Shown: in pieces, positions 15,801-60,800 of the stretch | Numbering within the stretch: the stretch's first letter is position 1 | Layout: each line of letters starts with the position of its first letter | NCBI RefSeq assembly: GCF_001194135.2 | Contig: NC_068982.1 | Span: 45,359,503 to 45,423,502, forward strand | Reading direction: 5' to 3' | DNA length: 64,000 nt | Source of the DNA: Octopus bimaculoides | Taxonomy: Eukaryota | Notes under the pieces: generated by a model | What the model was told of the DNA's origin: nothing | The model's input: only the letters and a program-made list of their open reading frames with translations | Database searches by the model: none | Translations under genes and position numbers: made by a program

Positions 15801-15911
15801 AGTCTCACTGTATGGCACTTTGGGCAAGTGTCTTGTACTATAGCCCTAGATTGACCAATGCTTTGTGAGTGAATTTGGTAGACAGAAACTGTGTGAAAGC
15901 TTGTCATACAC

Positions 15912-15951
<40 letters not shown>

Positions 15952-16620: not shown

Positions 16621-16708
<88 letters not shown>

Positions 16709-18292: not shown

Positions 18293-18331
<39 letters not shown>

Positions 18332-22049: not shown

Positions 22050-22081
<32 letters not shown>

Positions 22082-28000: not shown

Positions 28001-29310
28001 TGGAAAATGCATAATTATGAAACTATAATACACACCGAAAACACAAAGTTTACACATGCGCACTTAATTTGATTGTTATACATCAAAAATTCAAATTGAA
28101 TGCTGCCAAACAACGTACAGAGTCAGAGTAGTACAGCAGTGATCACATGACCACGTATTCTGATCCGATGTATTCAAATTTTATGGTCATCTTGTATTTC
28201 TGGCTACAATGCTTTTAGAAAACCTTTTTGCATATATGAGTTCCCATAAGCAACTTGTCTTAAAACCCACTGTTATGATCTTCAGAATTATAATAAGTAG
28301 GAAGGTATTGAGAATCAAGTCTTGATGGATACTTACTTGCACTCCAGATTGCTCATGGAATTCATTATCAACCCTCTCTGACTGCATAGCATGGCTAAAA
28401 GTTTGTGGCTGGTGCTCATTCTGACACTGAAGTTGCACCCATTCTGGGGGTTGATGTAGTAGTAACCTTTTTTAATAGGGAACCTCTGTGTTAACTTTGA
28501 GAGTTTTGTTGTAGAACTTGTCCTTTGTATTTTAAGTAGAATTGTGGGTTGGAGAATTAACACTGACAAGGTTCACTGGACCTTTGGCTATGTGAATCCA
28601 AAGTGAAAAATCTGGATGGCCTTCTTGCTAAAAACCTTTTTTGCTACCTCTTTCAACAAGCCAGAATACTGTGTACCTATCCTAAAACCTTAGATACATA
28701 TTCAATTCATTGTTAACCTTTTGATACAAACCAACCAGAGACTGCTCCTGCTTCTATGATACAAACTTTGTTTTAAAGTGAAATGAATTGGATAAGGTAA
28801 ATGTCTCCTAAAATTATATTATATTTACCTTAATTCAACCTTTGCCACCTGTTACATTCTTATTTTCTTATCAAGGTAACAACATCTGTTCTTATTACAT
28901 TTTTATATAAAAATTTAAACCTAATATTTAGATTTTCTATTTATGATTTCATTAAAGTTAGAAAATGGTAAGAGCAATTTCAGTATAAGATTGATGGAGA
29001 AACCTGCAAATCTTCACATGTTCCATGTTAAAGTTCGAGTTATTGAAAGCAACACAAGAGTGACAGAATATAAAACTGATAACACAGCAACTTTTGTCAG
29101 TGTAAAAGAAAGTGATCCCAAATACAAAGTAAGTATTACATAAAAAATATATTCACAAAATAATATTTAATTACTGTTTAAACAAGCATCTCCATTTCAT
29201 CTTTCTTTCCCTTAACCCCATAGTGTTCAGATTATTCTGTTAAATGTAATACTTATTAATTCATATTGTTTCAAACTAATCAAACATTATCTTGTCACTT
29301 TGAGATTTTG

Positions 29311-29351
<41 letters not shown>

Positions 29352-35300: not shown

Positions 35301-37635
35301 TACACTGACATGTATATATAATTACTGTCTAATTATAGAAGGCATATATATGTATACACACACACACGTACACACACATATACATGCATGCATGTACACA
35401 ATCACATACATACAGAGTGGACCTCTGAATAGTTTTCATGTAGAAAATTCCATTCACAAGATATTAGTCTACTCTGTGGTTATAGTAGAAGACATTTACT
35501 CAATGTACCATTTCCGACAATATATATATATTAAGTTTATGTATCTCTCTAGACTTAAGAGCTATATGTTTAGATATTTAAGTTCACTCAAACTTACCCT
35601 TCAAATTGAGATGGTAAATAACCCAAGATGTGTATATTATGCACTCCATCTAAAATAATTTTTTACCCCAAAATGGGATGATATTTAAGTAGTTCAGCTC
35701 CCACTCTCTAAGTAACTGTTTCTGCTTTAATTCTTGTTAATTCTCATTCTATTTCTCTCCCTCTCTTCCCCTCTCTCTCTCTCCCTTTCTCCGGTTGGGT
35801 AACCATGGACCTTCTCTACAGCAAGACATCTGTTTCTGCCTCTCTGTCACAATTCTAATTTTTCATCATCTGACAAAATATCACCTCCTCCAATGTACCC
35901 AGCCCTCTCAAAGACTCTTTGTCATGCAAAGTCACTTAGTGACCCCACCAGAGCTGGTGCCACTTAAAAAACACCCAGTCCACACTGTAAAGTGGTTGAC
36001 ATTTGGAAGGGCATTCAGCTGTAAAAACTACACCAAAACTGACCTCATCTGTGTGAGTTCCATGTAGAGAGCAAGTTGATACGAGTTTCCAAATATATTG
36101 TTTGATAATGTCAGATATAATCATTTTTACATTAATTTATCTTTTTCACATCCACTCATTCCATGCTAGTATGTGTTGGACACGACTTCTTAGGGCTAAA
36201 TTCAATAGCAGAATGCCCCTTTTGATGGTATATTCCATTCTTGATGACATCCCTTAATTGCTTTTTCATTAGCGTGGGCATGGCTGTGTGGTAAGTAGCT
36301 TGCTTACCAACCACATGGTTCCAGGTTCAGTCCCACTACGTGGCATCTTGGGCAAGTGTCTTCTACTATAGCCTTGGACCAACCAAAGCCTTGTGAGTGG
36401 ATTTGGTAGACGGAATCTGAAAGAAGCCCGTCGTATATATGTATATATATATGTGTGTGTGTGTGTGTTTGTGTGTCTATGTTTGTCCCTATAGCATTGC
36501 TTGACAACCAATGCTGGTGTGTTTCTGTCCTCGTAACTTAGCGGTTCGGCAAAAGAGATCGATAGAATAAGTACTAGGCTTACAAAGACTAAGTCCCAGG
36601 GTGAATTTGCTTGACTAAAGGTGGTGCTCCAGCATGGTCACAATCAAATGACTGAAACAAGTAAAAGAGTAAAAGAGTACCATATTTGATGGTATATATG
36701 GTGCAATTTTTCCTTCCCCAAAAATGACTTTAAAACATCATTCTGGGTCCCATATGTGAAGTAGGGTCTCCCATAAGCTTTAATGCTCTCATGACATTTT
36801 TTTTTCATGAATATGCACTATTGAAATTGGTGGGGCAGGTGCTTTATTTTGCTGGTCATCATACTTTGAAGGGGGACACAAGCAAACATCATTGTCAAGC
36901 TGTGTCAATATGAAGACACGTAGAGATAAACATGCAGAGATAACTGGGAGAGACAATAATGGCAGAATGTGATGAGAGTGATATTTATTACAGAGTTGAA
37001 TAATGGAAGAAAAATGCTAATGGCAGTTGATATCTTTTGCTGGCAAGAGAGGAAGTGTGCATGATGAATTATTGTAGAAATGATTGGTGGTAAGAGTGAG
37101 TAATGGATGGTCGCTGCCACCACCACCACCACCATCACCACTACCATCACTACCACCACCACCACCATCACCACCATCACCACTACCATCACTACCACCA
37201 CCACCATCACCACCACTACCATCACTACCACCATCACTACCACCACCACCATCATCATCACCACCANNNNNNNNNNNNNNNNNNNNNNNNNNNNNNNNNN
37301 NNNNNNNNNNNNNNNNNNNNNNNNNNNNNNNNNNNNNNNNNNNNNNNNNNNNNNNNNNNNNNNNNNNNNNNNNNNNNNNNNNNNNNNNNNNNNNNNNNNN
37401 NNNNNNNNNNNNNNNNNNNNNNNNNNNNNNNNNNNNNNNNNNNNNNNNNNNNNNNNNNNNNNNNNNNNNNNNNNNNNNNNNNNNNNNNNNNNNNNNNNNN
37501 NNNNNNNNNNNNNNNNNNNNNNNNNNNNNNNNNNNNNNNNNNNNNNTGCTTGAATAACAGTGATGCTACTTTACATATGTTGTCAGGACATCATATGTTG
37601 TCAGGACATGGGTATAAACTCACACACACACACAT

Positions 37636-37669
<34 letters not shown>

Positions 37670-39626
37670 TTGCACACACATTCATATATGCACACACATA
37701 CACAAACACATATGCACACACATACACAAACACACACACACACACATTCACATATACACACACACACACACACAAACACACACATGACGAACTTCTTTCA
37801 GTTTTCGTCTACCAAATTTACTTACAAGGTTTTGATCATCCTGGAAATATAATAGAAGACGCATGCCCAAGGTGCCATGAGGTGGGATTGAACCTAAGAC
37901 AACATGGTTGAGAAACAAGCTTTCCATTCACTCATCCATGAAGAAATGAAGAGCGATAGTAAATGGCCTGTGAGAGAGGGATGGTGGTTAGAAGTAGGGA
38001 AAAAGTAATGGTTACCAGCAGGGCTGGATTAAGACTCATAGAAGCTCTAAGCACTTAAAAATAATCTTAAACTGGAAGCATCCAAATTAGTCTTGCAGAA
38101 CTCACTTCATGGTGATGTAAGAAAAGGGAAATGTCGTCACATTTACATCAACAACTTCATTGCAGATACTGGCCTGGAATATATCCAGGACCTTGAGGTA
38201 GTGATAATAAACAGAGAAGTGTGGTGGATGGGCAGTTGCTGCAGCACAAGTTGGAACCCAGCGATAATAAATATAACTTACTAATTAATGTATTATATAG
38301 TTCATTCAACTGGCTATAACTCTTCTTTTACAAATTTGTACTTATGTACCAAATTTGTATATTATTTAAAATTATTTTTTTAGATGCTAATAGTATTTTA
38401 AGTGCAAGAATTATTTTATTTACTCACTCCTTAGTAGTCATTTAAAAATTTTCAGCATTTAGAAAATGAAAAGGTCATCTATGTAATTTTCAAAAATCTT
38501 TGCTATCACATTCTTCAATGGCTGTAGTGAAAAAAATAGTTGGAAAGAAATCCATTTCTCTTCAAAAAAAAAAAAAAAGAAAGAATATGTTCTTTGAGTT
38601 GCTACTTTTTGGTATATATGTGTTTGCATATTTTTATATGTATATTATTTGTATAAAATTACTGAAGTTATATTTATTGTTGGTCTTGTAAAAGACTGAA
38701 CGACACTTCTACACATACACAACACACACACAGATACTCTCTTTCTCTTCCCCCTCTCTCCCTCCACACATACACACACACTCTCTCTCTCTCTCTCTCT
38801 CCCTCAGTTATTTGTACCTCTTATGTCTGCATGTTTCATTATTGTTCAACATGTTTACGCGTCTCTTACAGTTTACATGCAGAAGTAAAGTACTCAGATC
38901 ACTCCTGTTGGGTGGCGGGTGTGGGAAGTGGTAAGAGAGAGAGAGGGAAAGGAAGGAGTGAGAGACAGATAGAGAGAGAGATTGATAAGCAGAGAAAGAG
39001 AGAAAGAGAGTAGTTGTGTAGGGATGAGTTTACGGAAGAGAAGAAAGGCATGTGAAAGAAGCAGAAGTATCTTGGAAGAAGATGAGAGAAAGAGTCAGGT
39101 AAATAAATAAATGGACAAATGAAAATATAGACAAATGAGTGGCTGTGTTATTTCTTTACTGCCCACAAGGGGCTACACACAGAAGGGACAAACAAGGACA
39201 GACAAACGGATTAAGTCGATTATAGCGACTCCAGTGCGTAACTGGTACTTATTTAATCGACCCCGAAAGGTTGAAAGGCAAAGTCGACCTCAGCGAAATT
39301 TGAACTCAGAACGTAGCGGCAGACGAAATACCGCTAAGCATTTCGCCCGGCGTGCTAACGTTTCTGCCAGCTCGCCGCCTATGAGTGGCTGTGTGGTAAA
39401 TAGCTTGCTTACCAACCACATGGTTCCGAGTTCATTCTCATTNNNNNNNNNNNNNNNNNNNNNNNNNNNNNNNNNNNNNNNNNNNNNNNNNNNNNNNNNN
39501 NNNNNNNNNNNNNNNNNNNNNNNNNNNNNNNNNNNNNNNNNNNNNNNNNNNNNNNNNNNNNNNNNNNNNNNNNNNNNNNNNNNNNNNNNNNNNNNNNNNN
39601 NNNNNNNNNNNNNNNNNNNNNNNNNN

Positions 39627-40474: not shown

Positions 40475-41495
40475 GAGTTAGNNNNNNNNNNNNNNNNNNN
40501 NNNNNNNNNNNNNNNNNNNNNNNNNNNNNNNNNNNNNNNNNNNNNNNNNNNNNNNNNNNNNNNNNNNNNNNNNNNNNNNNNNNNNNNNNNNNNNNNNNNN
40601 NNNNNNNNNNNNNNNNNNNNNNNNNNNNNNNNNNNNNNNNNNNNNNNNNNNNNNNNNNNNNNNNNNNNNNNNNNNNNNNNNNNNNNNNNNNNNNNNNNNN
40701 NNNNNNNNNNNNNNNNNNNNNNNNNNNNNNNNNNNNNNNNNNNNNNNNNNNNNNNNNNNNNNNNNNNNNNNNNNNNNNNNNNNNNNNNNNNNNNNNNNNN
40801 NNNNNNNNNNNNNNNNNNNNNNNNNNNNNNNNNNNNNNNNNNNNNNNNNNNNNNNNNNNNNNNNNNNNNNNNNNNNNNNNNNNNNNNNNNNNNNNNNNNN
40901 NNNNNNNNNNNNNNNNNNNNNNNNNNNNNNNNNNNNNNNNNNNNNNNNNNNNNNNNNNNNNNNNNNNNNNNNNNNNNNNNNNNNNNNNNNNNNNNNNNNN
41001 NNNNNNNNNNNNNNNNNNNNNNNNNNNNNNNNNNNNNNNNNNNNNNNNNNNNNNNNNNNNNNNNNNNNNNNNNNNNNNNNNNNNNNNNNNNNNNNNNNNN
41101 NNNNNNNNNNNNNNNNNNNNNNNNNNNNNNNNNNNNNNNNNNNNNNNNNNNNNNNNNNNNNNNNNNNNNNNNNNNNNNNNNNNNNNNNNNNNNNNNNNNN
41201 NNNNNNNNNNNNNNNNNNNNNNNNNNNNNNNNNNNNNNNNNNNNNNNNNNNNNNNNNNNNNNNNNNNNNNNNNNNNNNNNNNNNNNNNNNNNNNNNNNNN
41301 NNNNNNNNNNNNNNNNNNNNNNNNNNNNNNNNNNNNNNNNNNNNNNNNNNNNNNNNNATACCCCACATTAGTTCTGCAGGAATATAAATAAAACATAAAA
41401 AACAGACAGTGTTGGAACTCTTTTAAGCAAAATAATATATTCCTCTATACACAATCATACAAAAAAATCCACCTTTGTTTGTATTTATTTTTACT

Positions 41496-41550
<55 letters not shown>

Positions 41551-44500
41551 GAGTTAGTGTGTGTGAGTGTATATCAAATAAAGAACTTAAAATAGGTACA
41601 TCAAGCATAAAAGAAGAAAATTGAAATTATCCAGATACTGTCTGAATGATGAATGACAGCTAAGTGTTTTGTCATTTCCTGTGTCATTTAGGATGTTAAA
41701 CGAATTTAAAAATTTTAAAATATCTAACTCACCAGTCCATATGGTTATCACAGTAATGATTTTTGAATAGTTGAACATTTAGTATTTGTTAATGTGTTTA
41801 GTTGATTCTATTTTTGCTTTTTGTTTTTAGATTCACACTAATAAAATGGAATACCTTCCCAATGAAAACATTGAAGTTGAGATATCTGGTTCACCAGGCC
41901 AACATGTTGTGCTATTATTTATGGACAAGGCTATGGGTTACATTGACAGCCGACCCAAAATTACAAAAGAATTTGTAAGTAATCTTGCTTTTGTATTTGG
42001 TTTGCAAGGTTCTTGATGTGAAACTATGTGCTGAAACTGATATTATTATATTTTGGGAGGGACATTATACCAATAATAAACACACACACCGATTCTGTTT
42101 TACTACGTTCTTCATTCAAACCTGGAACAGATCTGGAGGAGAGAGGGCATGTATGTCATTGATGAGGTCACAAATGACAATGAAAGAACTCTGTCAGACA
42201 TAACTGATTGATTGATTGATTGATTAACCATATGATTAATCAAACAATTCATTAGTTAATTGTTAACTGGTTAATTAGTCAATCACTAATAATCAAAAAT
42301 GTCCAATAGAACCACTGCATATGTATATTATTGTAAATAATTATTTGTTAAAATTAAAATAAGTCAATGTAGCAAATACTTTTCTGTATTACAAAATTCT
42401 ACAGTTTCCTTGATATTAAACAGATGAGAGATAAATATCCCTTTGGATAGAAAACTGTTCTACTTCAGGTAGTTTTTCAGTGAGGAAGATTAAACATGCT
42501 CTGCAAGCCAATGATTTCTGCAGTAATTTCACAAAAATGCTGTGGTTTATAGTGGTTATCAGATTTGCAATATCTACATATAGCTAGGTAGACTTTGCCA
42601 TCAACAGTTAAAAAGACTTAACCATGAACAGTGTCTGGTGGGATTGGAAAGGAATTTCTGTACTATGAGCTTCTCCCAAGTAACCAGACAATTAATTCTG
42701 AGAAATACTGCACACAACTGGATGAGTTAAAAGCAGCAATTCAAGAGAAACGTCCTGAATTGGCCAACAGGAAGGGTGTTGTTTTCCAACATGATAATGC
42801 AAGACTGTAAGTTTCTTTGGGAACCAGACAAAAATTACTGCAGCTCGGCTGGAATGTGTTAGCTCACCCTCCATATTCATCAGATATTGCTCCTTCGAAT
42901 TTCCACTTATTCATGTCTCTGCAGAATAGTCTTAATGGTAAAAATTTCAATTCCTTGGATGAGGTAAAAAGATACCTTGATTATTTCTTTGCCATGAAAC
43001 CACCTCAGTTCTGGGAAGAGGGTATTTTCAAGTTAAAGGAAAGATGGAGACGCATTGTGCAACAAAATGGTTCATATTTGGTTGATTAAAAATGTAATGG
43101 CAAGTATTTATTGACCTTTTTCTTTCCTTTAAAAATCAGCAAGAACTTTCCGGACAACCCAATATATATATAGATATGTATGTATGTCTATATTTATGTG
43201 TATGTGTCTTTGTATTGGTGTTTGTTCCTCAACCATCACTTGACAACTGATGTTGGTGTGTTTACATCCCTGTGACTTAGCAGTTCGGCAAAAGAGGATG
43301 ATAGAATAAGTACTAGGCTTACAAAGAATAAGTTCTGAGGTTGATTTCTCTAACTAAAAACCCTTTAAGGTGGTTCTCCAGCATGGCTACAGTCAAATGA
43401 CTGAAACAAGTAAAAGAGTAAAAGAGTACAATATAACTAAACAATGCATTTTTGGAATGAACTGTACATGAAATTAATTTCTAAAATATAATATATTTTA
43501 TTGTCTATGTTTGTTATTAAACAGCATATTGCTAATTTTGTTCTCTCTATGGATTATAACATTTCTAGATAAGAGATGAAATGCTTTTGAATCTCCAAAC
43601 TGATAGAATGCTGAATGTAAGTTTGCATTTTGTCATTTCATTTTGTTTTATTTAATTTTTATTTAATTTAATTTTATTTTTATAAGCTCTTTACAGCAAG
43701 ATGCCTGTTCTTTTCCCTTTATCATATCTTGTCACCTGGCATAGAGTCACTTCTCTCAATATTACTTCCCACCTCAGCTGAGGGTGTCTTTGTCTTGCAA
43801 GTTACTTGGTGACCCTGCTTGGAGCTGCTGCCACATAAAAAGCACCCAGGACATTCTGTACAGTTAGGAAAAACATCCAGCTATAGAAACCCTGACAGGA
43901 GAGCTTCACAAAGACTTGTACCTTGCCAGCTCCTGTCAAACTGTCTAACCCATGCCATCATGGAAATGAATGTTAAATGATATTGATGATTTCAAAATGA
44001 ATGTTAAATGATATTGATGATTTCAAAAGCTCTGTGGAGTGGTTGGCATTTAAGGAGGGCATCCAGCCATAGAAACCAAGCCAAGACAGACTGGAGCCTG
44101 GTGCAGCTCTGCAGCTCACCAGCTCCAGTCACACCATCTTACCCATTCAAGCATGGAAAATGGATGTTAAATGATGATGAATATATTTTAGATTTATTTC
44201 AATGCAGGCATAGCTATGTGGTTAAGAATTTTTTTTGCAACAACGTGGTTTTAGTTGAGTCCCATTGTGAGATACCTTGGGCAAGTATCTTCCACTATAC
44301 CCCCAAGCTAACCAAGCCTTGTTGTAAATTTGGCAGATGGAAACAGAATAGAAGCATCTCTGTGCGGTAGTTGGTGCTAGGAAGGGCATCCAGCCAAAAA
44401 AACCATGCCAAAATGGACACGGAAGCCTGGTGTAGTCTTCTACCTGGCCAGCTCCTGTCAAACCATTCAACACATGCCAGCATGGAAGGCAGACATTAAA

Positions 44501-47500
44501 TGATGATGTATGATGCGGACATATTCTATGCCCATGAAATGTCAAATAATACCAAGCTGAATCAAACTGTTACTATATATCCTCATTGTCATTTAACATC
44601 CACTTTTCCATGCTTGCATGGGTCAGAGAGAATTTATTGAGGCAGATTTTGTATGGCTGGATGCTTTTCCCATCACCAACCCTCACCATTTTCCAAGCAA
44701 GGTTACATTTTGCCATCACTGGACATGTCTTTCCACAGAAGTGCGGAAATAAACAGCATTGTTTATATGTTGGTGATGCTCATTTACAAGAATCTTGTGA
44801 TGTTAAGACAAAGGTACACACAAATATACATACACACACTATGCACACACAGCACACAACATCATCTACAAGAGTAGTTTAGATGTATTTGTACTTAGCA
44901 TTTCTCATATTCATTTTTTCAATCTTTTAATGTTGAATATTTCAAATGAAATTCATTAACTACTGTTTTTATTTTTCCTTTACAGAATTTCAAGCTCTCT
45001 TTAATTGGGAATAGTGACAAAAAGAGAAGAGATGCAACAGTTGCAAAAGAAAATGTGCTCAATTCTCGTGCTGTTCCTTCTACCATTCCTAAGGAATCTA
45101 ATTTTTTGGTATCTTATACATTTTAACTATTTAACTTAACATAAAGGCTTTTAAATGTACATGTGCTCTTCTACTGCTGATTTACTTCCTAAATTACAAT
45201 ATTAACCCATTCACATTTAAACCAGCCATATCCAGCTCAAATATTCTACATATTTTAGGTTAAAACTGACCAGCTCCAACCTCTCACACCAAACCTACAA
45301 TGTCATTTTGAAAATATATAAACACACCATTGAAATCTTGAAGCTACAAGATAATGTGAGATTAATTCAAAACAAAGTGAATAAATAAGAAACATTTGAC
45401 AAAGAAATCTGGATGTAGATATGAAATTGTAATGTCCCAAACTTAGCACAAATGTTATATTGTATATTCACATGCAAGTTGAATTTTATTTGAAAAATGC
45501 TTAGCCTTTTTAATAAATTTATTTTTTAAAAAATATGACCATAAAAATTAATTCAAATTAAATTATATATTCATTTCAGCATATAAAAAAAGAAAAAGAA
45601 CCATACAATTCTTAATAATTAAATTTCTAAAAAATATTGGAATTAACTTTATTTCTTATCTCTTATTCCATTCTGTTTGTATCTGCAGGCAGAGCCTTCC
45701 CCTATGTCTCAAAGTTTGTTCAATGCTAATGTTGCTGAAGACTGTAAGTCTAAATTTATATTTATATATATATCTAACCTTCATATATTGCTTCATTTGA
45801 TAGTTTTTATTTGCTTTTTCCTGAAATATTTTTCAAGGTGTTTCAAAATGTTTTTATTATTATTATTTTTTTTCTTTTTAAGAATCTCTTTTATTGTTTA
45901 GTCTGAAGAGAAGGCACTGCTCAGGAGATCCTTTAGAAGGCTCCTGAAGCTGGTAGGAGGGAAGGAGAAAGGTATCCTCAAAGTGGAGACTAGGTTTCAA
46001 TGCTTGCAATAGAGTGGACTTCACTAAAGGCTCTTAAGAACTGGTGGTGGTGTTAAACTGGTCCTTGAGTGGCATTAGAAGAGCCCACTTTTAAGCTTTT
46101 ATGCTAGGTCTCTGGTTTCAGGATATTTCTGACACCTACCTTCCTCCCATTAATTTTTAGAAGTCATATAAAATATTTTGAGTATTGCCTGAATGTTATG
46201 TAAATTAAAATGTTGCTAATTATTTGAATTAATATTTTAAATAATTTAAGGTAGTGAGCTGGCAGAATCGTTAGCATTCCAGGCAAAATACTTAGCAATA
46301 TTTCGTCTGTCTTTACATTCTAAGTTCAAATTCTGCTGAGGTTGATTCTGCCTTTCATCCCTTTAGGATCAATAGAATAAGTACCAGTTGAGTACTGGGA
46401 TTGATGTCATTGAATTTCTTCCCCTGAAATTGCTGGCCTTGAGCCAAAATTTGAAAGCGACATCTTAAATAATTTATATCAAGCATTTATGACTCCATCA
46501 ATTTTATTTATATCATTTTGTCTTCTTTTGTTTTCAGACTCGACTGATTCTTTATCTGGAATGTTTTATGATCTAACATTGAGGTAATGTATATTTTCTG
46601 AAACTCTTTGTGAGAAATTGTTTTGAAGGGATATGCAGTTTTTTTTTTATTGGGTTATTCAATGCAGTTATAATACTAATGAGAACCACAGATGTCTTAG
46701 TTGATAGCTCAGTGGTTCTCAACCATTTTCTGCCTATGGATCCCTTTGATTCCTATTCTACTCTACTGGACCCCCATAGCTATTCAATGTATATAAAAAC
46801 CATCCTACTGGATTTTTGTAATTTAATGTTATTAGGAGTTGTATTAAAAATTAAAATATTCTGTGTATTAAAGAAGTATAGCCAATTTATTGTACATAAA
46901 TTTTAACAATAAAATCCTATATGAACCCCGGTTGAGAACTACTGTAGCTAAAGGTTTAATTCTTTAGCATTCAAATCTGCCATATCTGGCCTAAATACTT
47001 TACCTGTTCTATGTTCAAATCAGCCAAATTCAGCCTCTTACATCTACCCCACAATATCATTACCAAAGTAAAGAGTCACATCACAGAAATCTCATAGCTA
47101 TGAGATAATGCATAACTGATTCAAAATAATGTGATTAAGTAAACATTACGTTTCAGAGTTCTTCTCACTCAACTCATGTGGTACCCAAACATCGGAGTGA
47201 TTTGTGTACCCAAGCTTTACCAGGTGCTCATGAAGAATGGATTTTGATAGCTTGTGTATATATATATATATATATATACACACACATTATTCTCCACTCT
47301 TACTGTGCTCTCTACACCTTCTGATTGATTCTTACATGTGTTAACAAGTACCTCCTTGCAACAATGTAAACTTTCATTCAGTTAAGATACCCTTGGCCTG
47401 AAGAGTAGCCTACGGTGTACACCTCACTTGGATATTTACCACTTCCAAGGTTCTGCTTGCTATGAAACATATGTAGCCCAGATCTTATCTACTCCATTCC

Positions 47501-50500
47501 TTAACTCTTGTATTCATATTCGCATACTTGGCAACCCTGATCACCGACCATGAAATATAAAAAAGAGACCTTTTTATAGTTTATCGTACTTTGATGTGAA
47601 AAAATCCACACTCTCCTATCTCAATGAACCACTATTGTCCTTGAAAGTTGTTTATTATATTTACTATGGATTGGTTGAAGCTAACTTTCTTCCTACACCT
47701 TGATCCTTGGATTGATCCTGGTGTCATGTAACTGGCACCTGTGCCAGTGGCATGTGGATATAGCACCTTTCAAAAGTTGAGCCTCATGGAGGCACAGTGA
47801 TTGATGCTGGTGTCTCATAACTGGCACCCATGCTGGCGGCATGTAAAAAGCACCTTTCAAGCATTTGGGCCTCATGGAGGCAAAGTGGCCGATGCCGGTG
47901 ACACGTGAAAAGCACTTTCCAAGTTTTGGGCCTCACAGAGGCAATGGTGAATGACCAAGGCATTATGGCGTGAGGAAAGGCAAAGTCAACCTCAATAGAA
48001 TTTGAACTCTAAGCATAATGGGTTGGTACAAATACCATAAAGTACTTTTCTGACACTTCTGTTGGCTTGCTGACCTTACTGTGAGGTGACTGTCGTTATC
48101 GTTAGACCTAACTCATCATAAATAAATACCACTATGAGTGCGCAATGATGCCATCAACAGGTTGGTCCTGAAACAACATGTATTCTGTCTTCATGACCCC
48201 ATAAACTTGCTAGCATCCAGTATGTGAAGCTTTCAACTGGTAACACTTGCAACTGCGAGTTGTTTGCAAAAAAAATCCAATAGTAATAACATTTATATAA
48301 TTTGTTCTAAAATCACACTATATATATATATATATATTTTTTTTTTGTCTTTCAACAGAAATGATGGTATGCAGAAGATAAATTTCTCTTTACCAGATAA
48401 TCTTACCACTTGGGAGATTCAAGGTTTCGGAATTATTGATAATACACATTTCTGTGTAGCTGAAATAGCTGAAGTGAAAACTTTCAAAAGTTTTGTTGTC
48501 AAAATGAATTTCCCTAAAGTTGTAAAGCAATTTAATTTTACAATGGTTACGGTTCTTCTATATAACTATAAGAATACAGCTCTACGAGTAAGTTCCAGCA
48601 TTACATTTATATGTTTTCCATTCAGTTTCATCATCATCCACATCATCGTTGTCATCATCTTGTGATCATATTTCATCATCATTGTCCTGCTCCTCCTCTT
48701 CATCATCATTATCATCATTATTATTGCCAATACTATCATCATCATCATCATCATCATCATATTATTATCATCATTATTGTCCTTGCTGTCATCATCATCA
48801 TATTCAATCACATTGTCATCATCACCACTGTCATTATTACCATTGTCATCATCGTTATTATCATCATCGTTGTTGTTGTCATCATCATCATTATCATTTA
48901 TTTCTGCTTCCCATGCTAGAATGGGTTGGTATGGGTTAGACCATGTCAGTTCGTATTTATTTGGAGTTATTTGTGTATGTGTGTTATTGTGTTGTGTTGT
49001 GTGTGTGTATATGGTGTTTAATGTGTGTGTGTGTGTGCATGCATGCACGTCAGTGTATACATTTGTTCACATGCATGTGTGTTTATGCAGGTGTTTACAT
49101 TTTGTGCTTCTCATGAAAATTACTGAGCTGTAAATAGTGACGTTTGCTGACATTTCCCAGTCAACAAATCCTTTAGTAGTTCTGTGCTTTCAAAGAGGAG
49201 TAAAATAAAACTCCCTTACTCGAAAAACAGGTATGGATCAGTAACAGGAAGGTTGTCCAGCTATAAGACAATGCCTCAATAATGTTTATTTGTTTAACTT
49301 TTGTTAGTATGGAAAAATGGACCAGCTGTAAAACCCATGCCAAAACCCACCTTACCAGTACTGGTGCCACATAAAATGCACTCAATCCACATTGTAAAGT
49401 GGTTGGTGTTAGAAAGGGCATCCAGCCATAAAAACCATGTAAAAACAGACATTGAGACCTGGTGCAGTCTTCTGGTGATCCAGCTACTGTCAAACCTTCT
49501 AATCCAATGGTTCTCAACTATTTTTTGCTTGTGAACCTTGATTCCTCTTTTACTTGGGTGGACTCCCATAGCCATTTGTTGTTTTTAAAAATCCCATATT
49601 TTTATATTTAAATACCATTGGGAATCATATATAAAAAGAATTTGTTAAAATACTTTGTGTATTGTAGAAGTATAAGCAATATATTGTAGATAAATTTTAA
49701 TTATATCTTATATGGACCCTGCAAGGGCCAATTAGACCCCAGTTGAGAACCACTGATCCAATCTGTGCCAGCATGAAAAATGGACATTAAGTGATGGTGG
49801 TGGTGACGACGATGATATGTTTTGTTTTGTCTTACAAATTAAACCATTTTTATTTTCCTTTTTTGTTCCTAGGTACAAGTTACACTTCATGAATCAGCAG
49901 ATGTTTGCTCATATGTCAATAGAAATGGACATCATTATGAAACAAGTGTTGATATTGAAGCAAATGAGTCTAAATCTATCTTTTTTGTTATTCGGCCTCT
50001 TAATTTAGGAAAATTTCCCCTTAAGGTCTCTGCAAGAGATACTGGATCAAATGATATAGAAATCATTGAAGAAGAAATGTTTGTTCAAGTGAATACTCCA
50101 AAAGTAAATAATATATTAATCTATCTTCTATCTTTTACTTGTTTCAGTCATTAGATTGTACCTGTTTTGGGACACTGCTTTGAAGGCTTTCATCAAACAA
50201 ATTGCCCCGAGAACTTATTTTTTTAAAGCCAGTTCCATTGATTTCTTTTGCTGAAGTGCTAAGTGACAAGGGTGTAAGCAAACTAACATTGGTTGTCAAG
50301 TGGTGGTGGCGGTGGGGACAAGCACAAACACAAGGACACACACATACAGATATATGCACACACACACACATTTATATATATGATGGGTTATTTCAGGTTC
50401 CAACTACCAAATTCACTCACAAGTCCTTGGTTGGCTTGGGATTATAGCAGAAGGCACTTCCCCAATTTGCCATGAAGTGGGCCTGAACCCAAGATCACAT

Positions 50501-53500
50501 GGGTGGGAAGCAAGCTTTTTAACCATGCAGCAACATCTGTTCCTCTAATTTATTTAATATCTTTTACTTATTTTTTCAATGATCAGCTTGATGCTATAGT
50601 AGAAATATAAAAAAATTTTTTAAAAAGCCACTCACCCATGATGTACAGTGGGACTGAACCTGAAACCATGTTGTTGCAAAGCAAGCTTCTTGACCACACA
50701 GCCATGCTTGCACCTGTTGAATATTCTTACTTTAATTTTAAAATTTTATGTAAATATTTGAAGAACACAATTTTTAGATAATGAAGTAGTATTTGTATTT
50801 TTGTTTTGATTTGTTTAACAGTTTGAAAAAAAAGAAAATAGAAACTTCACCAACAATAACCTTCCAGTTGAGAAAGTTCCAGATAATGAAATATCAGTTA
50901 AAAATCGTATGTAGAGAATTAGATTCAATCAAAATTCTATTACACTTATGTTTGATTTCTATTATCATATTTTAAAATTTTGCATTAATTTTTTAAAAAT
51001 GCACCATATTTTCCAGCATACAAGCCCATGTAATACATAGTGTAAATAAGGCTGCGGGCTGGCAGAATTGTTAGCACACTGGACAAAATGCTGTCAAGTA
51101 TTTTCTCTATTCTTTTATTCTTTCATTCTTTTACTTGTTTCAGTCATTTGACTGCAGCCATGCTGGAGCACTGTCTTGAAGGGTTTTAGTAGAACAAATT
51201 GAACCCAAGGCTTATTACTTAAGCCGAGTACTTACTGTATTGGTGTCCTTTGCTGAACTGCTAAGTTGCAGGGATGTAAACACACCAACACCAGTTGTCA
51301 AGTGGTGATGGGGGGACAAGCACTGACAGAAAGACACATACGCACAACACACATATATATATGACAAGCTTCTTTCAGTTTCCGTCTACCAAATCCACTC
51401 TCAAGCCTCAAGACTATAGCAGAAGGCACTTGCCCGAGGTGCCATGCAATAGGACTGAACCCAGGACCATGTGGTTAGGAAGCAAGCTTCTTACCACATA
51501 GCCATGCCTGCGGCATCTTTACATTCTGAGTCCAAATGCTGCTGATGTCGATTTTGCTTTCCATCAACTTAGCCCCTTCTCTGAAACTGATGTCCTTGTG
51601 CCAGAAATTTGAAACCAATATATTGTGTAAACATGCAGTGTAAATATTCAAACATTGTCACTATTTTCCCAAATTCTGCTGCATTTCACATGGAATTTCT
51701 GGTCCTCCAAAGTTGTCTTGGTGCATAAATTGGTCTACCTGTTTTGGCCGTAGATTTTAGCCTGAAAACTTTCACTTGTATGCCTGGAAAATATGATATA
51801 AAGATTTCATGACAAATACTTTTCAAATTAGATATTAAAAAAATCTTATATTATAGTCATCTCATTTCATCATCATCATCACCATTGCTTTTAATGTCCA
51901 CTTTTCCATGCTTACTCAGATCAGATTGAGGTAGATTTTCTATGGCTGGATGCCCTTCCTGTCACCAACCTTCACTTGTTTCCTAGCAAGGAAGTATTTC
52001 TCCATGGTTAGACATATTCTCATAGAAAAATAGAAATGAACAACAACACCTCTGTTGTGGAGGGGATATTCCTTTACAGCCATCACATGGCAAGGAGACA
52101 CAAACACACACACATTTCTATATGTGTGCATGTATACATGCATGCATATGTACCTGCACACACACACACACACACACACACAAACAACACATTTTCATTC
52201 AGATATGCTTTACTTGAAATAATACATAATTCATTTACTTTCTGACATTGAATTTGAAAACGTTAATTTATCCTTTTCTTTTCTTATTGCACTAGGTTAT
52301 TTATTTAGCAGTATTGTGAAAACTGCCTTGACTGAACCTGGAAAATTGATACTCATGTCTTATGGATCTGGAGAGCAAAATATCATTTATATGGCATTAA
52401 CAATTTATGCTCTAAAATATCTCAGAAATACTATCCAGATGGATGAGAAAGTGTATGAGAATGGGAAAGAATTCATAAGAATGGGTAAAGTTAATTTTAA
52501 ACTCAGTCTATGTCCTTAATTATCTAACATATATAATACAAAATTTTATATCTGTAACGTAATTTGCTTTCATTTATAATGGCTACTTGGATTCATTGCA
52601 TTAAGTTAAATATGTTAGTTGCTGTTGTTGAACCCTTATCAGACTTATAATCAAAAGCAACCCAAATTTCACAATTTCATCCTTTTAACCCTTTTGATAC
52701 CAACCTGCCTGAAACTGCCCAGGGTCTGATAAAACTGTTTTAGTTTAGATTACTGTTTTAAGGTATCTAAATTAAGACTTTCCTTCAAAATTTCTTGTGA
52801 ATATATGATCCAATCACCTGCTTAATAATAACAAAGCTATTTCACTAAATTCTTCATTGTTTACAAAATTAATTGTAACAAAAGCTATGTATTTCAACAG
52901 ATATAGTAACAAAAAAGGGTACTGCCTCAAAGAGTTATAGTCAAACAAATGAACCCTGGGACTTATTCTTAAAGCTTGGTACTTATTTTATTGGTCTATT
53001 TAGTCAAACCACTATGTTACAGGGATGTAAACAAATGAACACTTGTTGTCAAGCAAGAGGGTAGGGAAAGCCGTTATAAAAATTTACTTTGTACACAAAC
53101 ATACATGCACATGCACATACCTATGTGTGCATGTGTATATAAAGAAGTAAACACTGGATGGATAGTTATTTGCTCACTACAGCTATTTCAGACATGTTTT
53201 TTATTGATGAATACAGTTATTATATCATGTGAAAAAAAACAAACATTTACATCAGGTAAAGATAGGCAAAAATTAAACATTTAAAAAAAAACATCCCACA
53301 AATCCAAGCATGTGCCATTTCATGACACTCTGGTGAACTTTGGTCACCTGGCGAAAACGTTTTTTTTTTTTCCACTCCTATTCATCAATAAAAATCACGT
53401 TTGAAACAGCTGTAGTGAGTGAACCACTACCCAAGTGTTGTTATTTGTTTATTATTCACCTTACTCAGAATCTGCAATTAACGTGGATCTGGAGTCTATT

Positions 53501-55310
53501 GAGTGCAGTACAATTGGGACAGTGTTTGTACTTAGTTGCAGCCTTGAGACTTGTGGTGTATTCAGTTGGATGTTTGTGATTGTACATGCAACTTGAATAT
53601 AAATCCATTTTTACTTTGGTATGTACGTATATGTTTCTCTAATGCTGTTTTGTACATGATAGTGATCTTATTGATCTGTCGTTAGTGATTTACTATTTAA
53701 GGAGCTGATTCACTTGAATCTTGAACTTTAATACACACACACATGCGAGTGCGCATTCAACAGGCTTCTGCACAGTTTCCATCTACCAAATTCACTCACA
53801 AAGCATTAGTTGGACAGGGACTATTGTAGAAGACACTTCCTCAAGATGCCATATCTTAAGCTATTGACTTATGTTAAGCAGATTGGTAGAAAGAATAGTA
53901 AAACACAATAGAATTACCTTGTTTTGAATGAGATTTGGTAGATAGAACAGAAATTCTCTCCAGGCAAAACTTGAACTGAAGATAACCTTTAACAACCACC
54001 TCATGTGTTTTTGTTGCAAATAAGTTGGTTGGATTATTTAGACTGTAAATGAGAGAGGAAAATGTCAAGCTAAAATCTGCCGTAGTTTAACTATGAATAA
54101 GTAACTATTAAGTCTGTGTGTTCATCCTCATTTCCTTCATCCCAGAATTTGAAGTTATTATGAAAAGTTTAGGAAGTGTTAGTCAGAGGAGCTTTGAAGG
54201 ATCAAATAACTCATACAATCAAATACTTGTTGAATTTATTCAATTACTTTCTTTAGAGTATGGGAAAAGAAAGTTAGAAAACTAAACTGAAGAGTCAGTA
54301 AGCAAAAAGTTGTGGTTGGATTTTTTGGTAAGACGATAATCAAACATTATAAACGCTGTCAAAAAGCAGTCACAGACTGAATTTACTCAAAAGACTTTTT
54401 ATTTTTATTTTTCAGGTATTGAAAAACAAATGACTTTTAGAAAAAATGATGGTTCTTTTTCAACTTTTGAGAATACAGAATCAAGTACATGGTAACGATA
54501 AAAATTTCTGACTTTATTTTCAAAGATATCAATCCTTTATAATAGCAAAATGTTACTTAACCATTTCGTTACCGTATTTATTTTGAGATGCTCTGTTTCT
54601 TTCAATTAATTTTAAATATAAAGAATTTAGTTACCTTTAATATAAAGAATTTAGTAAAGTAACTAAGTTACCTTTAAGCTAGTATTAGAAACATCAGTTG
54701 TGACTAAGCTTTGGTGGAATATTTTAATTCAAAACTTATGAAAACAAGACATTTGTACTATAGAGCCAGAGGCAGTTTCAGCCGGGTTGGTACTGAAAGG
54801 GTTAATGCATAATATTACTTTATTCATAGAATTTCAGGCTTGGCTGGGTGGTTAAGAAGTTTATTTCCTAACCATTTGTTTCAGGTTCAGTCCCACTGTG
54901 CGGTATCCTGGATACATGTCTTCTACTATAGCCCCAGGCTGATCAAAGCCTTGTGAGTGGGGCTTAGTAGGTAAAAATTGAAAGAATTCCATCACACACA
55001 CACACACACACACCTATGTATATGTGTGTGTTTGTGTGTATGTGTGTGTGTGTGTATCTTTGTGTTTGTCATTGTGTTTTTGTTTGACCCCCACCCCCAC
55101 CACCACTACCACGACCATATGACACCCAGTGTTGATTTGTTTATGACTAAACAGTTTAGCAAAACGAGATCGATAGAATAAGTACCAGGCTTAAAAAATA
55201 TGTGCTGCAGTTGATTTGGTCAACTAAACCCTCCAAAGCAGGGCCTCAGTATGGCTGCAGTCCAATGACAGAAACAAGATAAAATTAAGATATATATATA
55301 TATACACATA

Positions 55311-55354
<44 letters not shown>

Positions 55355-57617
55355 CAGGCATGTGTTTATGTATGTATTTATATTAGTTTGTGTTATGGTA
55401 AGACATTCTGTGAATCAGAATTTTGGATTGTTTTAAAATCAATTCTTGTAGACTGCCTGTTCTTGGCTGACAATAAGAGACTAGGTTTTGAATTACAAAG
55501 CATATAACCTTGTGATTTTGCATCGTTTTGTGTAAGCTACCGAACTTGTCCCATAACTGACAGAAGAGCTGGCAAAGAAAAAAAAAACAGTTTTTGAAAA
55601 AAGAAAAAATTCAAGTGAAAAGTTTTTATTGTCATCATCAGCATCATTATCAAAGTGTACAGGATGCTTTTTATCATGGCACCAACTCTAGAAGGGTTGC
55701 TGTGTTCTGAACAAGATGAAAGAATCCCCTTGATCCCACTCCTTACAGAGTGTACTGTGTACATTTTATCATGGCACCAACACAAGAGGATTTGCTATAT
55801 CTTCAATAAAATTAATGGGTCCCCACCCCAATATCTCTATTTACCTGCCTCCTATTTTACAAAATATCACTCCAGGGTTGATTTATAGTGATACCAACAA
55901 TAATGGGTTTGCTTCATACCCCTGAGATTAGAGAGTCTTTTACAACCCTATAGATTGTTTGCTAACCCAGGGCTACATAAGTAAGGAGGGGGAGACAGAG
56001 ATGACAGGAGAGGGGAGTAAGTGTGTGATGATAGAAACAGTGTTTGGGATGAGAGGGTGGTGGTAGAAGGAGTGAGAAGAGAGTGATGAACTATTTCAAA
56101 AGGATGTCTGTATAATAGGAATTTAAAATAGTATATTTCCCAGTTTGTGAATCAAAATTTACAGCCCCAAAATGGTAGGTTGGCTTGTAGACCAAGAAGA
56201 TTTTGAAGAACCAAAGATCTCATGTGAAATGCAACAGGATTTTGAATGATAGTGATGATATTTGAAAGTTTACGCTACATTTGTACACTATATACTAAGC
56301 AGGATTTGGTAAGATAGTGTGGAGGTTTGAATGTTTACACTACAAGGTGCTGGCATGGCTGTATGGTAAGAAGCTTGCTTCTCAACCACATGGTTCCAGG
56401 TTCAGTCCCACTGTGTAACAATTTGGGCAAGTGTTTTCTACCATAGCCTCGGGCTGACCAAAACCTTGTGAGTGGATTTGGTAGCTGGAAACTTGAGGAA
56501 GCCCATTGTATATATGTATATGTTGTATGTATGTTTATGTGTGCGTGTCTTTGTATCTGTGTTTGTCCCCCACCATCACTTGACAACTGATGTTGGTATG
56601 TTTACATCCCTGTAACTTAGCAGTTCGGCAAAAGTAGCCAATAAAATAAGAACTAAACTTACAAATAATAAGTACTGGGGTTCGTTTCTTCGACTAAAAC
56701 CCCTTCAAGGCAGTGCTCCAACATGGCCACAGTCAAATGACTGAAACAAGTAAAAGAATAAAAGAATACTTGTATACACCATATGCTATGTTAGATTGTA
56801 TGCTAGAAAATACTGTATTTAATTTTAATTTTTATTTAGGTTGACAGCATATGTAATGAAGATATTTTGTGAGGCATTAACCCTGCAAGAAGTAGACAGA
56901 TCTGTCATATCATCAGCATTTCTATGGTTGCTGAAGAAACAGAAGAATAATGGTGCATTTAAAGAAGACAAATTAATCATTTATAAAGAAATGATGGTAT
57001 GTTTGTAATTTTAGGAATTTTCCATATTGATTTGCTCTTGCTTTTAATTGTTTTTTTTTTCCAAATTATTAAAATGCTAATTATCTAAAAAAAAAAGTAC
57101 AGTTTTTGAATGATAATAATTATGATAATATTAATGATGGTTGCTCCTGTCAATTTCAATGTATGTGCGTTTGAAAGAGTGGATTTTAATAAAAAAACAT
57201 AAATGGAGAAAACAGCTTTTAAAAATCAAAAAGCCAAAAGACGCTGCTTTTATTTGTGATGGCTGTGTGAATGTAATTTGAGTCCAGATATAGATTTTAG
57301 TAAGAAGGTGCAATGAGGACACTGGTGATTATAGGTTTGCCTGGTATTAGATAAATGTATCTGTTGATTGCAGGATATAGTTCATTTATTGTTCATTTTC
57401 TTCAACTCAAATTGTTTTGATGCATCATGACACATTTTATGCCATACTGATTGAACTAAGTAATGTACAGTTTTTTGAATAATAATAATAATAATAATAA
57501 TGATAATAATAATAATAAATAGTAATAATAATAATAATAATAATAAATAGTAATAATAATAATGATAATAATAATAATAATAAATATAAATAATAACAAT
57601 AATAATAATAATAAGTA

Positions 57618-57814: not shown

Positions 57815-60800
57815 GTAATAATAATAATAAATAGTAATAATAATAATAATCCTTTCGACTATAGGTACAAGGCTTGAAATTTTGGGTGAGGGGCAGTTCA
57901 ACCCCAGTGTTCCACTGGCACTTATTTCATAGACCCCGAAAGGATGAAAGGCAAATTTAATCTTGGCAGAATTTGAACTCAGAACATAAAGATTTGTGAA
58001 ATGCCACTAAATAATAATAATATAAACCAAACATCCATCTATAAGTTGCTGGCATGCTCTGGTGTCAAGTTGGTAAAACTGAAGGGTATATTATTGCTGC
58101 TTAGGATCAGTGCCTTCCATCTGGGAATTACTTGTGTAATGTTCTGAAACATGAAAACAGCCAATTGTGCCATGTACGCAGAGAGCATCCAGAGATAATT
58201 AACCATGAAATCTCTGGATGCAGCTGACTGACACCAACAGAGTATTTGCAATGACTTGACAGGAAAGCTCAAGACGTATTTCAAAAATTTAACAAAAGGA
58301 AAATTTTACAAAAAATATAACAAGCAGAAAATTTGTAGCAAATTCTTCATCGGTCAATGTCCAAAAAGTTATTACAATTTCGTACCTTTAATGTTGATAT
58401 TGTTCACTTTTAGTGGGGTTGATTTGCTCGACTAAAGGCGGTGCTCCAGCATGGCCACAGTCAAATGATTGAAACGAGTAAAAGAGAAAAAAAGAGTAAA
58501 TATAAATAAAGTGGAAGTATACAAAAATAAACATTATTTTCCATCTGTTAGTTTTTGTTTTATTTTGAAAAATAAAAATTCCTCTTATGGTTTATTATTG
58601 TTTATAATTTGAATTACACATGCATGGAGCACCAAAATTTTCTTTAAGTGCTTAGGGCCTTTTTTTGGATCTTAATCTGGCTCTGATCTTTAGATGCAAA
58701 AACCTGTTGTCACTTAATGTTTCTTGTTGAGATTTGGGTACAGCTTGTATGAATTAAAGCAAAGGCAAAACATAACACCAACAACAATAATTTTCTTTTC
58801 ATTTAATCCAGGGAATTATTTCTGATACTGGCTTGACAGCATTCATTTTAATTAGTTTCATGGAGTGTAAAGAAAATTTTCACCAAAAGGTAATTGTTCA
58901 TTATCTCTTATAAAAGGTTCTCTCATAGATTCAGCAAATGTAATTCAGCAATGAATTTACATTAGCCTGAATGTATGTTTGCATCTGTAAGTATACTGTG
59001 TATGAGTGAGTGTGTGTGTGTGTTGTGAGTGTGTGTGTGTGTGTGTGTGTGTGAGTGTTTGGAAACCAGATGCTATGATAAAAGCATGATATAAATTTAC
59101 TAGCACAGTTACCAAAAATATTTTTGTACCATACTTCACCTACCTCCTTGCAAATGTGTATGACAACTTGAATATTTTTAATGTAAAACACTAAAAAGAT
59201 ACACATCATTATATATGTAAATCTACATAGTAGACATACAGATATGTCAAATTTACCTATTTCTCCTTAGATTGAAAAAATAAATTTTTGCTCCTTATTG
59301 GGGTTTCATCTGAGGTTTTGACATCACTTAACCAAGTAACCAAAGCCTATATATAGCATTTAAAACAGTAGTTTCCAAAGAGGGCAGTACTACCCCACTG
59401 GGGTGGTGGAAAGATCTAGGGGTGTTGAAGAAAAGTGGGGCGATAATGGGATGGTCAAGGGTGGCCAAAAGAGGGCAATGGATGTAAAAGTGACAAAATA
59501 ATGGATTAATTAAGTTTTATTCATGAAATACAGTTGTTTTGAATCTACTGCAGAAAGTGGTCTCTGTTTGTGGTGGTGAGTAGGAGAAGGGGGCACTAGA
59601 AATGTGGCCTGAATGCCAAAGGGTCAGCAACCTGAAAAAGTTTGGGGATTTAGAAGAATAATGTAATGACCATATCAATATTTACAAGTCAATAATTTGG
59701 CACTCCGTCGCTTACGACGTTGAGGGTTCCAGTTGATCCGATCAACGGAACAGCCTGCTCGTGAAATTAACATGCAAGTGGCTGAGTANNNNNNNNNNTG
59801 CTCGTGAAATTAACATGCAAGTGGCTGAGTACCCCACAGACACATGTACCCTTAACGTAGTTCTCGGGGATATTCAGCGTGACACAGTGAATTACAGGTA
59901 CAACAGAAACAGGAAGTTAGAGTGAGAAAAAGTTGTGGTGGAAGAGTACAGCAGGGTTCGCCACCATCCCCTGCCGGAGCCTCGTGGAGCTTTAGGTGTT
60001 TTCGCTCAATAAACACTCACAACGCCCGGTCTGGGAATCGAAACTGAGATCCTATGACCGTGAGTCCGCTGCCCTAACCACTGGGCCATTGCGCCTCCAC
60101 ACAAGTCAATAAGTAAATATTACATAAATGGCACATGACAATGCCAACTATGCCCTGTAGAGAAATATTCAGAAGCAAAGGAAAGGAATTTTAAATCCAG
60201 AATGTATATACACATCACAAACACCATAAGGTATTTTGTTTGATGTACTAATTTATGATTTAGAAAAAGTGATGAGCCTATTGTTGATGAAGAATAAAAC
60301 TCTAACAAAGTCGGTCATCATGATAATGATGAAGCATAACAATAACATTCTTGTGAATTAGATTCTAACATTCTTCACTGCTGCTTCATTTTTCTGCTTT
60401 TTTTTTTTTACTTTTTTATACATTGGGAAGTGAATTGACTGAAAGTTTCGATGTGGATTTTGCAGCTCTGAGTGAAACCAAGCTCTCAGGAGAAGGCTCA
60501 CTTGAAGAACAAGGTTCCAGATATACAATCTTCTGGAAAGGAAAGGAGCCTGGCCAACCAGACTGATGCAACATGAAATAAAATGTTTTGCTCAAAAACA
60601 CAACGCACTGCTTGTTCCAGGAATTGAAACCAAGATCACAAGATCATGACTGCAACACTCTTAACCACTAGGCCACGTTCCTTCATGCAAACAAAGACCA
60701 GATGAATTAAGTCCTGTTGATCCTAATATGATCAAGATAACAAAAAGCAAAAGTTTAGCTCTTTAACATTGAAACAGGCCATATCCTGACAAAATATTCT

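Follow-up and report, generated by a model that had tools for sequence, protein, structure and literature searches.

A 64,000-nucleotide stretch of the Octopus bimaculoides genome (assembly GCF_001194135.2, contig NC_068982.1, positions 45,359,503 to 45,423,502 of the forward strand), here called the window, was analyzed, and it probably contains most of a functional, remodelled octopod paralogue of complement C3 that is thioester-less, maintained by selection and acting non-covalently. The original prediction for this DNA had described a C3-like protein with a dead thioester site, encoded by about 985 codons over 24 exons without a stop. An independent reconstruction gave the same figures, with 24 exons between 1517 and 63657, all flanked by AG and GT, continuous phases, 985 codons and 0 stops. 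These exons were placed by homology: the protein of an Argonauta hians orthologue was mapped exactly onto its own locus, the open reading frames (ORFs) of the window were searched against that locus, and splice sites were then read for the exon ends. Chaining exons de novo from splice scores and codon usage returned the strong ones along with many false ones, and the homology approach replaced it.

The thioester-site motif lies at 52355-52384 (+), where ATG TCT TAT GGA TCT GGA GAG CAA AAT ATC encodes MSYGSGEQNI, exactly as predicted. In alignments to the PDB chains of CD109, C3, A2M and TEP1, the codon TCT at 52367-52369 fell on the thioester Cys of GCGEQ, and alignments and a motif table with the C3 proteins of Argonauta and the horseshoe crab gave the same position; the reactive Cys that marks membership of the TEP superfamily is thus absent from the window protein, which has GSGEQ instead. 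The conserved Pro two residues upstream of the Cys site is likewise Ser (TCT, 52358-52360), and the thioester Gln is retained (CAA, 52376-52378). The catalytic His of C3 sits about 110 residues past the thioester, and this residue is also replaced, PVIHQEM of C3 being aligned to LIIYKEMM with Tyr encoded by TAT at 56982-56984. The Argonauta orthologue has Tyr at the same place, an identical GSGEQ and an identical TCT codon for Ser, and the codons flanking this Ser differ only synonymously between the window and Argonauta (GGA/GGT, GAG/GAA, CAA/CAG, AAT/AAC and ATC/ATT). The predicted death of the thioester is therefore borne out at two residues in both species.

The orthologue was found by an exhaustive HMMER search with the motif-bearing exon (exon T) as the query, in which the nearest relative was GAB1607438.1 (P0004) of Argonauta hians, a protein of 1226 aa annotated as 'CD109 antigen-like', with 86% identity over the exon. 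Its locus is BAAFZT010000059.1 (hereafter L001), and the canonical C3 of the same species is GAB1607029.1 (P0005). A word-indexed protein search yielded 0 matches with exon T, two distant proteins with the concatenated exons and one more with a query-plus-match profile; as it missed even the Argonauta orthologue, its silence is uninformative on absence. Another database protein, P0009, carries GSGEQNM and is a tandem triple of a C3d-like segment with Gly-Ser linkers; it looks engineered rather than like a natural thioester-less protein, and is not to be included among the relatives. Between the window and L001, collinear similarity of nucleotides was limited to exons, the other matches being dispersed repeats, and exon lengths and phases were equal in both species for exons of 71, 138, 43, 88, 171, 66, 186, 48, 46, 189, 76, 157, 78 and 175 nt. 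In Argonauta, 13 further annotated exons past the point corresponding to the window end encode the rest of TED, CUB, MG8 and C345C.

The order of MG domains, A2M domain and TED that characterizes the TEP superfamily is present in the window protein, with Pfam matches to MG1 (weak), MG2 (1e-8), MG3 (5e-9), A2M_BRD (1e-16), A2M (5e-23) and TED_complement (2e-50). Exon by exon, the best canonical matches were Argonauta C3 and horseshoe-crab C3, ahead of A2M- and CD109-like proteins. Over its C-terminal 143 residues, the orthologue matches the C345C region of Argonauta C3 (E = 7e-8), and the cysteines of the two fall in line; the Pfam NTR domain was undetected in the orthologue at E <= 0.01 and, with 21.7 bits, just missed the 21.9-bit cut-off in canonical Argonauta C3. 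Moreover, a neighbor-joining tree of the MG6b-MG7-TED region (414 columns, 18 taxa and 500 bootstraps) was inferred. Its references were search matches, a fragment of human CD109 taken from the PDB alignment, and sequences copied out of the PMC7016707 supplement, with iTEPs left out. In this tree, the window protein and its Argonauta orthologue grouped at 100%, the pair grouped with Argonauta C3 at 89%, and the C3 clade was recovered at 99%. Grouping with Mcr sequences (DmMCR, TcTEP4 and BgMCR1) received 0% and grouping with Biomphalaria BgC3-1/3, which joined BgC3-2, received 1%, placing the octopod pair outside these described thioester-less groups. The C3-like identity given in the original prediction accordingly stands, and the tree and alignments support a C3-clade member rather than a CD109, A2M or Mcr protein. 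Because the octopod pair groups with BgC3-1/3 at only 1% bootstrap, a thioester loss independent of that group as well as of Mcr is also supported by the phylogeny, and the suggested parallel to C5 and Mcr would be a separate one, branching with cephalopod C3.

Apart from the thioester chemistry, several domains were found to be lost or reduced. The interval between MG6a and MG6b (41975-48358, no N gap) is fully sequenced and encodes a linker with 0 cysteines, so the protein has no anaphylatoxin domain; a regular-expression search likewise found no ANATO six-Cys pattern in any frame of the window, and the Argonauta orthologue is also without ANATO. The same kind of search turned up no FPETW-like motif in the window. 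In both species, MG4 lacks about 100 of the residues present in canonical C3, with no Pfam MG4 match, and an Asn-rich linker takes the place of the first CUB half, with 28 residues in the window and 52 in Argonauta, compared with about 95 in canonical C3. No extra conserved exon for the missing MG4 or CUB parts was found in the intervening introns when window ORFs were compared with L001. The furin-type basic RxxR site for beta/alpha processing is kept (KKRR at 45019-45030; RKRR in Argonauta), MG8 and a C345C-like module are retained in the Argonauta orthologue, and conservation along the protein is highest in TED.

Comparison of the window with Argonauta over 853 aligned codons revealed 60% amino acid identity, with proportions of nonsynonymous and synonymous differences (pN and pS) of 0.243 and 0.776, respectively, while TED had 78% identity and a pN of 0.116. 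Since synonymous sites were saturated, dS was not computable by NG86 or YN00, and pN/pS and a maximum-likelihood estimate were used instead; the latter gave a dN of 0.31, a dS of 3.0 and an omega of about 0.1, a value not near 1 that the saturated dS bounds rather than measures. Every loss described above is common to both species, so the losses predate the split between them and the gene has been maintained since. Considering these values and the shared open frames, the gene, motif included, has been under purifying selection since before the octopus-like/argonaut split.

These features point to a scenario in which a cephalopod C3 gene was duplicated and one copy was then remodelled. The protein would be secreted and cut at KKRR into two chains; the Cys-Gln thioester could not form, hence there would be no covalent attachment to targets, and no C3a-like peptide would be released. 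Action would then be by non-covalent binding through TED and the remaining MG ring, in recognition, as an opsonin-like molecule or as a regulatory scaffold, with TED as the likeliest binding surface because it is the most constrained region. The 'effector' role given to the protein in the original prediction remains an inference. Such a protein would be analogous to C5, Mcr and Biomphalaria BgC3-1/3, though independent of them in origin.

Within this explanation, the protein could instead be a constitutively 'activated-like' C3 derivative that acts in the fluid phase on the canonical C3 pathway, as a platform, decoy or regulator rather than as a pattern-binding opsonin, and we regard this as unlikely. 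Thioester-less mutants of C3 and A2M adopt an activated conformation, cobra venom factor and C3(H2O) are the comparators for such a state, and C345C is the factor-B-binding end in vertebrates. The position as sister paralogue of canonical C3 would suit this role, as would the retention of the processing site, MG7 and TED, together with MG8 and C345C in the orthologue. However, neither the alpha'-N-terminal acidic segment nor the FPETWLW region is conserved, MG4 and CUB are shortened, and no partners are known; moreover, the proposal is a sub-hypothesis of the main explanation and not an alternative identity.

A covalent alternative is an internal Ser-Gln oxo-ester between the new Ser and the Gln that was kept, giving a covalent cross-link or a weakly reactive bond. 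The stretch Gly-Ser-Gly-Glu-Gln-Asn is identical in both species despite saturated synonymous sites, which is more than a dead site seems to need, and by contrast the motif of BgC3-1/3 is wholly scrambled. Nevertheless, the catalytic His is lost, the literature regards the same Cys-to-Ser, Gln-retaining state of Mcr, BgTEP3 and tsetse TEP2 as bond loss, and structural packing of the TED helix can explain the conservation, making an oxo-ester very improbable. For the two proposals combined, there is a small chance that the stripped-down C3 duplicate with its constrained GSGEQN-bearing TED works in a new way, either as a permanently 'open' platform, like C3b or cobra venom factor, that regulates or hijacks the C3 pathway, or by means of a stable Ser-Gln oxo-ester.

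The thioester-less paralogue could also be a pseudogene, decaying or unitary, with a frame that is open by coincidence, a reading that would accommodate the loss of the thioester Cys, the catalytic His, the anaphylatoxin domain, most of MG4, half of CUB and FPETWLW, as well as the failure to find expression evidence. Yet the chance that 985 random codons are free of stops is ~3e-27 (stop-trinucleotide frequency 0.060), the splice sites of all 24 exons are intact, and Argonauta shares the structure, including conserved exon sizes and phases, and a fully open frame despite saturated synonymous sites (pS 0.78 versus pN 0.24, with a TED pN of 0.12). In addition, the losses are common to both species and hence older than their split, the gene having been kept since. 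In the window and Argonauta, the marks of a pseudogene, namely stops, frameshifts, lost splice sites and an omega near 1, were not found. The pseudogene reading is thus highly unlikely and appears already largely refuted, in agreement with the earlier argument against decay.

A placement in CD109/iTEP, A2M or Mcr rather than beside C3 was suggested by several observations, including the public name of the orthologue, the PDB search by phmmer, in which CD109 was the top match (1e-42, compared with 8e-41 for C3, with further matches to A2M and TEP1), the motif context M-S-Y-G, which resembles MPYGCGEQ of CD109 and A2M, the lack of an ANATO domain, and the Ser that Drosophila Mcr also has at the site. 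The phmmer values do not separate CD109 from C3, whereas the tree, in which human CD109 stood for the CD109/iTEP group, placed the window protein in the C3 clade and CD109 with the A2M-like and Mcr sequences, away from it, and exon-wise identity was highest to the C3 proteins of Argonauta and the horseshoe crab. Moreover, the orthologue ends in a C345C-like module and not in a transmembrane or glycosylphosphatidylinositol tail, and no LDLa-type cysteine or DxSDE pattern was found by regular expression in any frame of the window, the MG6a-MG6b interval being gap-free. Membership of these groups is therefore scarcely probable, and the label 'CD109 antigen-like', which conflicts with the C3-clade placement, looks like a misnomer.

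Finally, TCT is one base from TGT and the draft assembly has six N gaps, but it is exceedingly improbable that a misassembled or misread base, or a rare allele, conceals a thioester in the true protein, because the independent genome of another genus has the same TCT among codons that differ only synonymously, and the catalytic His is likewise Tyr in both species.

Several points nonetheless weigh against a functional, non-covalently acting C3 paralogue. No transcript, protein or activity evidence was obtained for the gene. The one octopus TEP found in a proteome paper, the 'CD109 antigen' that is abundant in Octopus vulgaris ink, was rejected as its product, having another N-terminus and coming from another gene. 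With MG4 and half of CUB lost, the protein may no longer fold or behave like C3 at all. The saturated dS leaves omega bounded only, and the tree was inferred by a distance method from 18 taxa with long branches. In the gene model, two linker exons (45689-45743 and 50822-50906) were accepted for their phase and splice sites and a weak similarity, no convincing candidate for a signal-peptide exon was found in 1-1516, and the last third of the gene at the 3' side, with C345C, falls beyond the window end, so that the orthologue alone shows it.

To place the octopod gene among known systems, it was compared with thioester-bearing and thioester-less relatives. Canonical cephalopod C3 (Argonauta hians GAB1607029.1 and Euprymna scolopes Es-C3) represents the sister group of the octopod pair, with which it shares the order MG1-MG3, MG5-MG7 and TED, followed in the Argonauta orthologue by MG8 and a C345C-like region, as well as the RxxR site, at 36% identity over MG6b-TED; GCGEQ, the catalytic His, a Cys-rich anaphylatoxin domain, a full MG4 and a full CUB are all present in canonical C3 and all absent from the window protein. 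Vertebrate C5, the classical thioester-less relative of C3, is similarly a C3-derived paralogue that engages in non-covalent interactions, but its anaphylatoxin (C5a) is kept along with MG4 and CUB, and its origin lies in the vertebrates, whereas the octopod gene branches with cephalopod C3 and not with that of vertebrates. Cobra venom factor is likewise a lineage-specific C3 paralogue that makes no use of a thioester and has a derived role, although ANA and TED are present in its precursor and removed by proteolysis; the octopod gene is not known to be expressed in venom or salivary tissue.

Among invertebrates, 5 of the 11 Biomphalaria TEPs have a mutated thioester site, including BgMCR1 and BgMCR2, and BgC3-1 and BgC3-3 have neither a thioester nor an anaphylatoxin domain (PMC7016707). 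The latter two resemble the octopod gene in being molluscan C3-clade paralogues without the thioester site and anaphylatoxin and, as far as the Argonauta orthologue shows, with C345C kept. They differ in not being orthologous to it and in their scrambled motifs (LVNAEEV and LIAQEVL), compared with the G-S-G-E-Q-N kept in octopods. The arginine-rich cleavage region was recovered in BgC3-2 only and not in BgC3-1 or BgC3-3 (PMC7016707), whereas the octopod protein keeps KKRR and is without MG4 and the first half of CUB. Mcr/TEP6 and BgMCR1/2 are also selected thioester-less TEPs, and Drosophila Mcr, which reads PMESGEQN (PMC7016707 supplement), has Ser for Cys with Gln kept and acts without covalent attachment (PMC7016707, PMC12254109). 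Unlike the octopod protein, which has no LDLa and whose orthologue has a C345C end, Mcr sits on the A2M/CD109 side of the family, carries an LDLa domain and has a transmembrane helix at its C-terminus. The same single-residue change, Cys to Ser with Gln preserved, occurs in BgTEP3, tsetse TEP2 and chicken ovostatin (PMC7016707), but these are iTEP/CD109 or A2M group members that lack C345C and are otherwise canonical in their domains.

The novelty attached to the original prediction was therefore overstated, as thioester-less C3-like proteins, Mcr orthologues and a Cys-to-Ser iTEP have already been published for a mollusc (PMC7016707). Both the principle and the exact substitution are already known, molluscs included, and the octopod gene is a new example rather than a new principle. 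What is new is a cephalopod case, independent of the gastropod one, with an unusually well preserved GSGEQN and with the additional loss of MG4 and the first half of CUB; literature searches found no described thioester-less C3 paralogue in cephalopods. The gene extends to cephalopods a recurring pattern of the complement family, in which duplication is followed by the loss of covalent chemistry from one copy, and the case appears independent of the gastropod, arthropod and vertebrate ones. The copy has been kept under purifying selection though four features usually held central to C3 have been lost, and it may thus serve as a natural experiment on the capacities of the C3 scaffold and TED without a thioester. 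On the practical side, the public name of the orthologue is misleading and its gene model incomplete.

The window itself is AT-rich (about 35% G+C) and repeat-rich, and all exons of the model lie on its forward strand. The first of them inside the window, exon 2 of the model, starts MG1 (TEYMMFMPKVFRC...) at 1517-1674 and has AG/GT borders, phase 1, a weak Pfam MG1 match and an alignment to the N-terminus of Argonauta C3. The end of MG1 and the start of MG2 (...GHIFIQTNLPIYRRNEK) are encoded at 5440-5667, as judged by homology, splice sites and Pfam. MG2 continues in exons at 14665-14735 (conserved with L001 3686-3756, 71 nt and the same phase in both) and 16394-16531 (L001 4434-4571, 138 nt in both) and ends at 23028-23070 (L001 8055-8097, 43 nt in both). 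MG3 starts at 24685-24772 (IVPKFQLEINTEP..., conserved with L001 9939-10026; Pfam MG3), continues at 26815-26893, an exon placed by tblastn to P0004 and P0005 and by splice sites, and ends at 28958-29128, with 56% identity to P0004 and 171 nt in both species. The sole remnant of the MG4 region is the exon at 30118-30225, placed by homology to Argonauta. MG5 begins at 31994-32059 (66 nt in both, conserved with L001 13048-13113) and continues at 35030-35215 (58% identity to P0004, 186 nt in both), and MG6a was placed at 41831-41974 by homology to Argonauta.

Four linker exons follow MG6a. The first (43569-43616, IRDEMLLNLQTDRMLN) measures 48 nt in both species; the second (44986-45108) carries KKRR, where RKRR stands at the aligned Argonauta position, and 0 cysteines; the third (45689-45743) is the least certain of the model, chosen for its phase and splice sites and for a weak resemblance to Argonauta exon 9; and the fourth (46538-46583, 46 nt in both species) has ...DSLSGMFYDLTL in place of the canonical FPETWLW. 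MG6b and MG7, with the A2M domain (...PDNLTTWEIQ...), are encoded at 48359-48587 (PDB alignment, homology and Pfam), and MG7 continues at 49873-50088 (PDB alignment, homology and splice sites). The short Asn-rich linker that replaces the first half of CUB lies at 50822-50906 and is of moderate certainty, with a fitting phase and weak similarity to Argonauta exon 13. Exon T, at the start of TED with the thioester-site motif, spans 52296-52484 (AG at 52294-5 and GT at 52485-6) and has 189 nt and phase 2 in both species, with 84-86% identity to P0004. The remaining TED exons are those at 54416-54491 and 58812-58889, both placed by homology to Argonauta, the one with LIIYKEMM at 56840-56996 (homology and codon alignment), and the last inside the window at 63483-63657 (homology and phase), the gene extending beyond 64000. 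The six N runs (2702-2905, 17339-17441, 37267-37546, 39443-39626, 40482-41357 and 59789-59798) all fall in introns of the model, and none need hide an exon, since the phases run on without a break and Argonauta, whose locus has no gaps, shows no additional exon at the corresponding places.

The public model GAB1607438.1 begins within an MG3 exon and omits at least 4 conserved upstream exons (L001 3686-10026, corresponding to window 14665-24772); it also skips the conserved 66-nt MG5 exon. An inverted second MG6a exon was observed in an intron of L001 (24874-25029, minus strand), which translates identically to the copy at L001 17754-17909, and may have come from local inverted duplication or from an artefact of assembly. 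The Argonauta MG3 exon at L001 10293-10407 is 36 nt longer than its counterpart at 26815-26893 in the window as the result of an internal repeat (...YGQPYMESMEAHYGKNYLDSK... versus ...YGRSYFDSM...), and a poly-Pro stretch of the Argonauta linker is absent from the window linker exon at 44986-45108. Linkers thus seem to change by insertions and deletions with the frame preserved.

Traces of mobile elements were also observed in the introns. In the intron after the MG6a exon, two adjacent frame-0 ORFs at 42628-43086 (+) (...VFQHDNARL... and ...HPPYSSDIAPSNFHLF...) look, by eye, like a fragment of a mariner/Tc1-type transposase. Similarly, ORF fragments at 60369-61427 (+), between the TED exons 58812-58889 and 63483-63657 (...FAALSETKLSGEGSLEE...YTIFWKGK...), look by eye like debris of a retrotransposon of the long interspersed nuclear element (LINE) type. 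A short dispersed repeat occurs in several introns, for example at 26469-26546, 29351-29491, 44358-44496 and 51925-51970, and has many copies on both strands of L001, with translations including ...WLDALPNTN... and ...GARKGIQPKKPCQ...; it appears to be an element resembling short interspersed nuclear elements (SINE-like) that is common to octopods.

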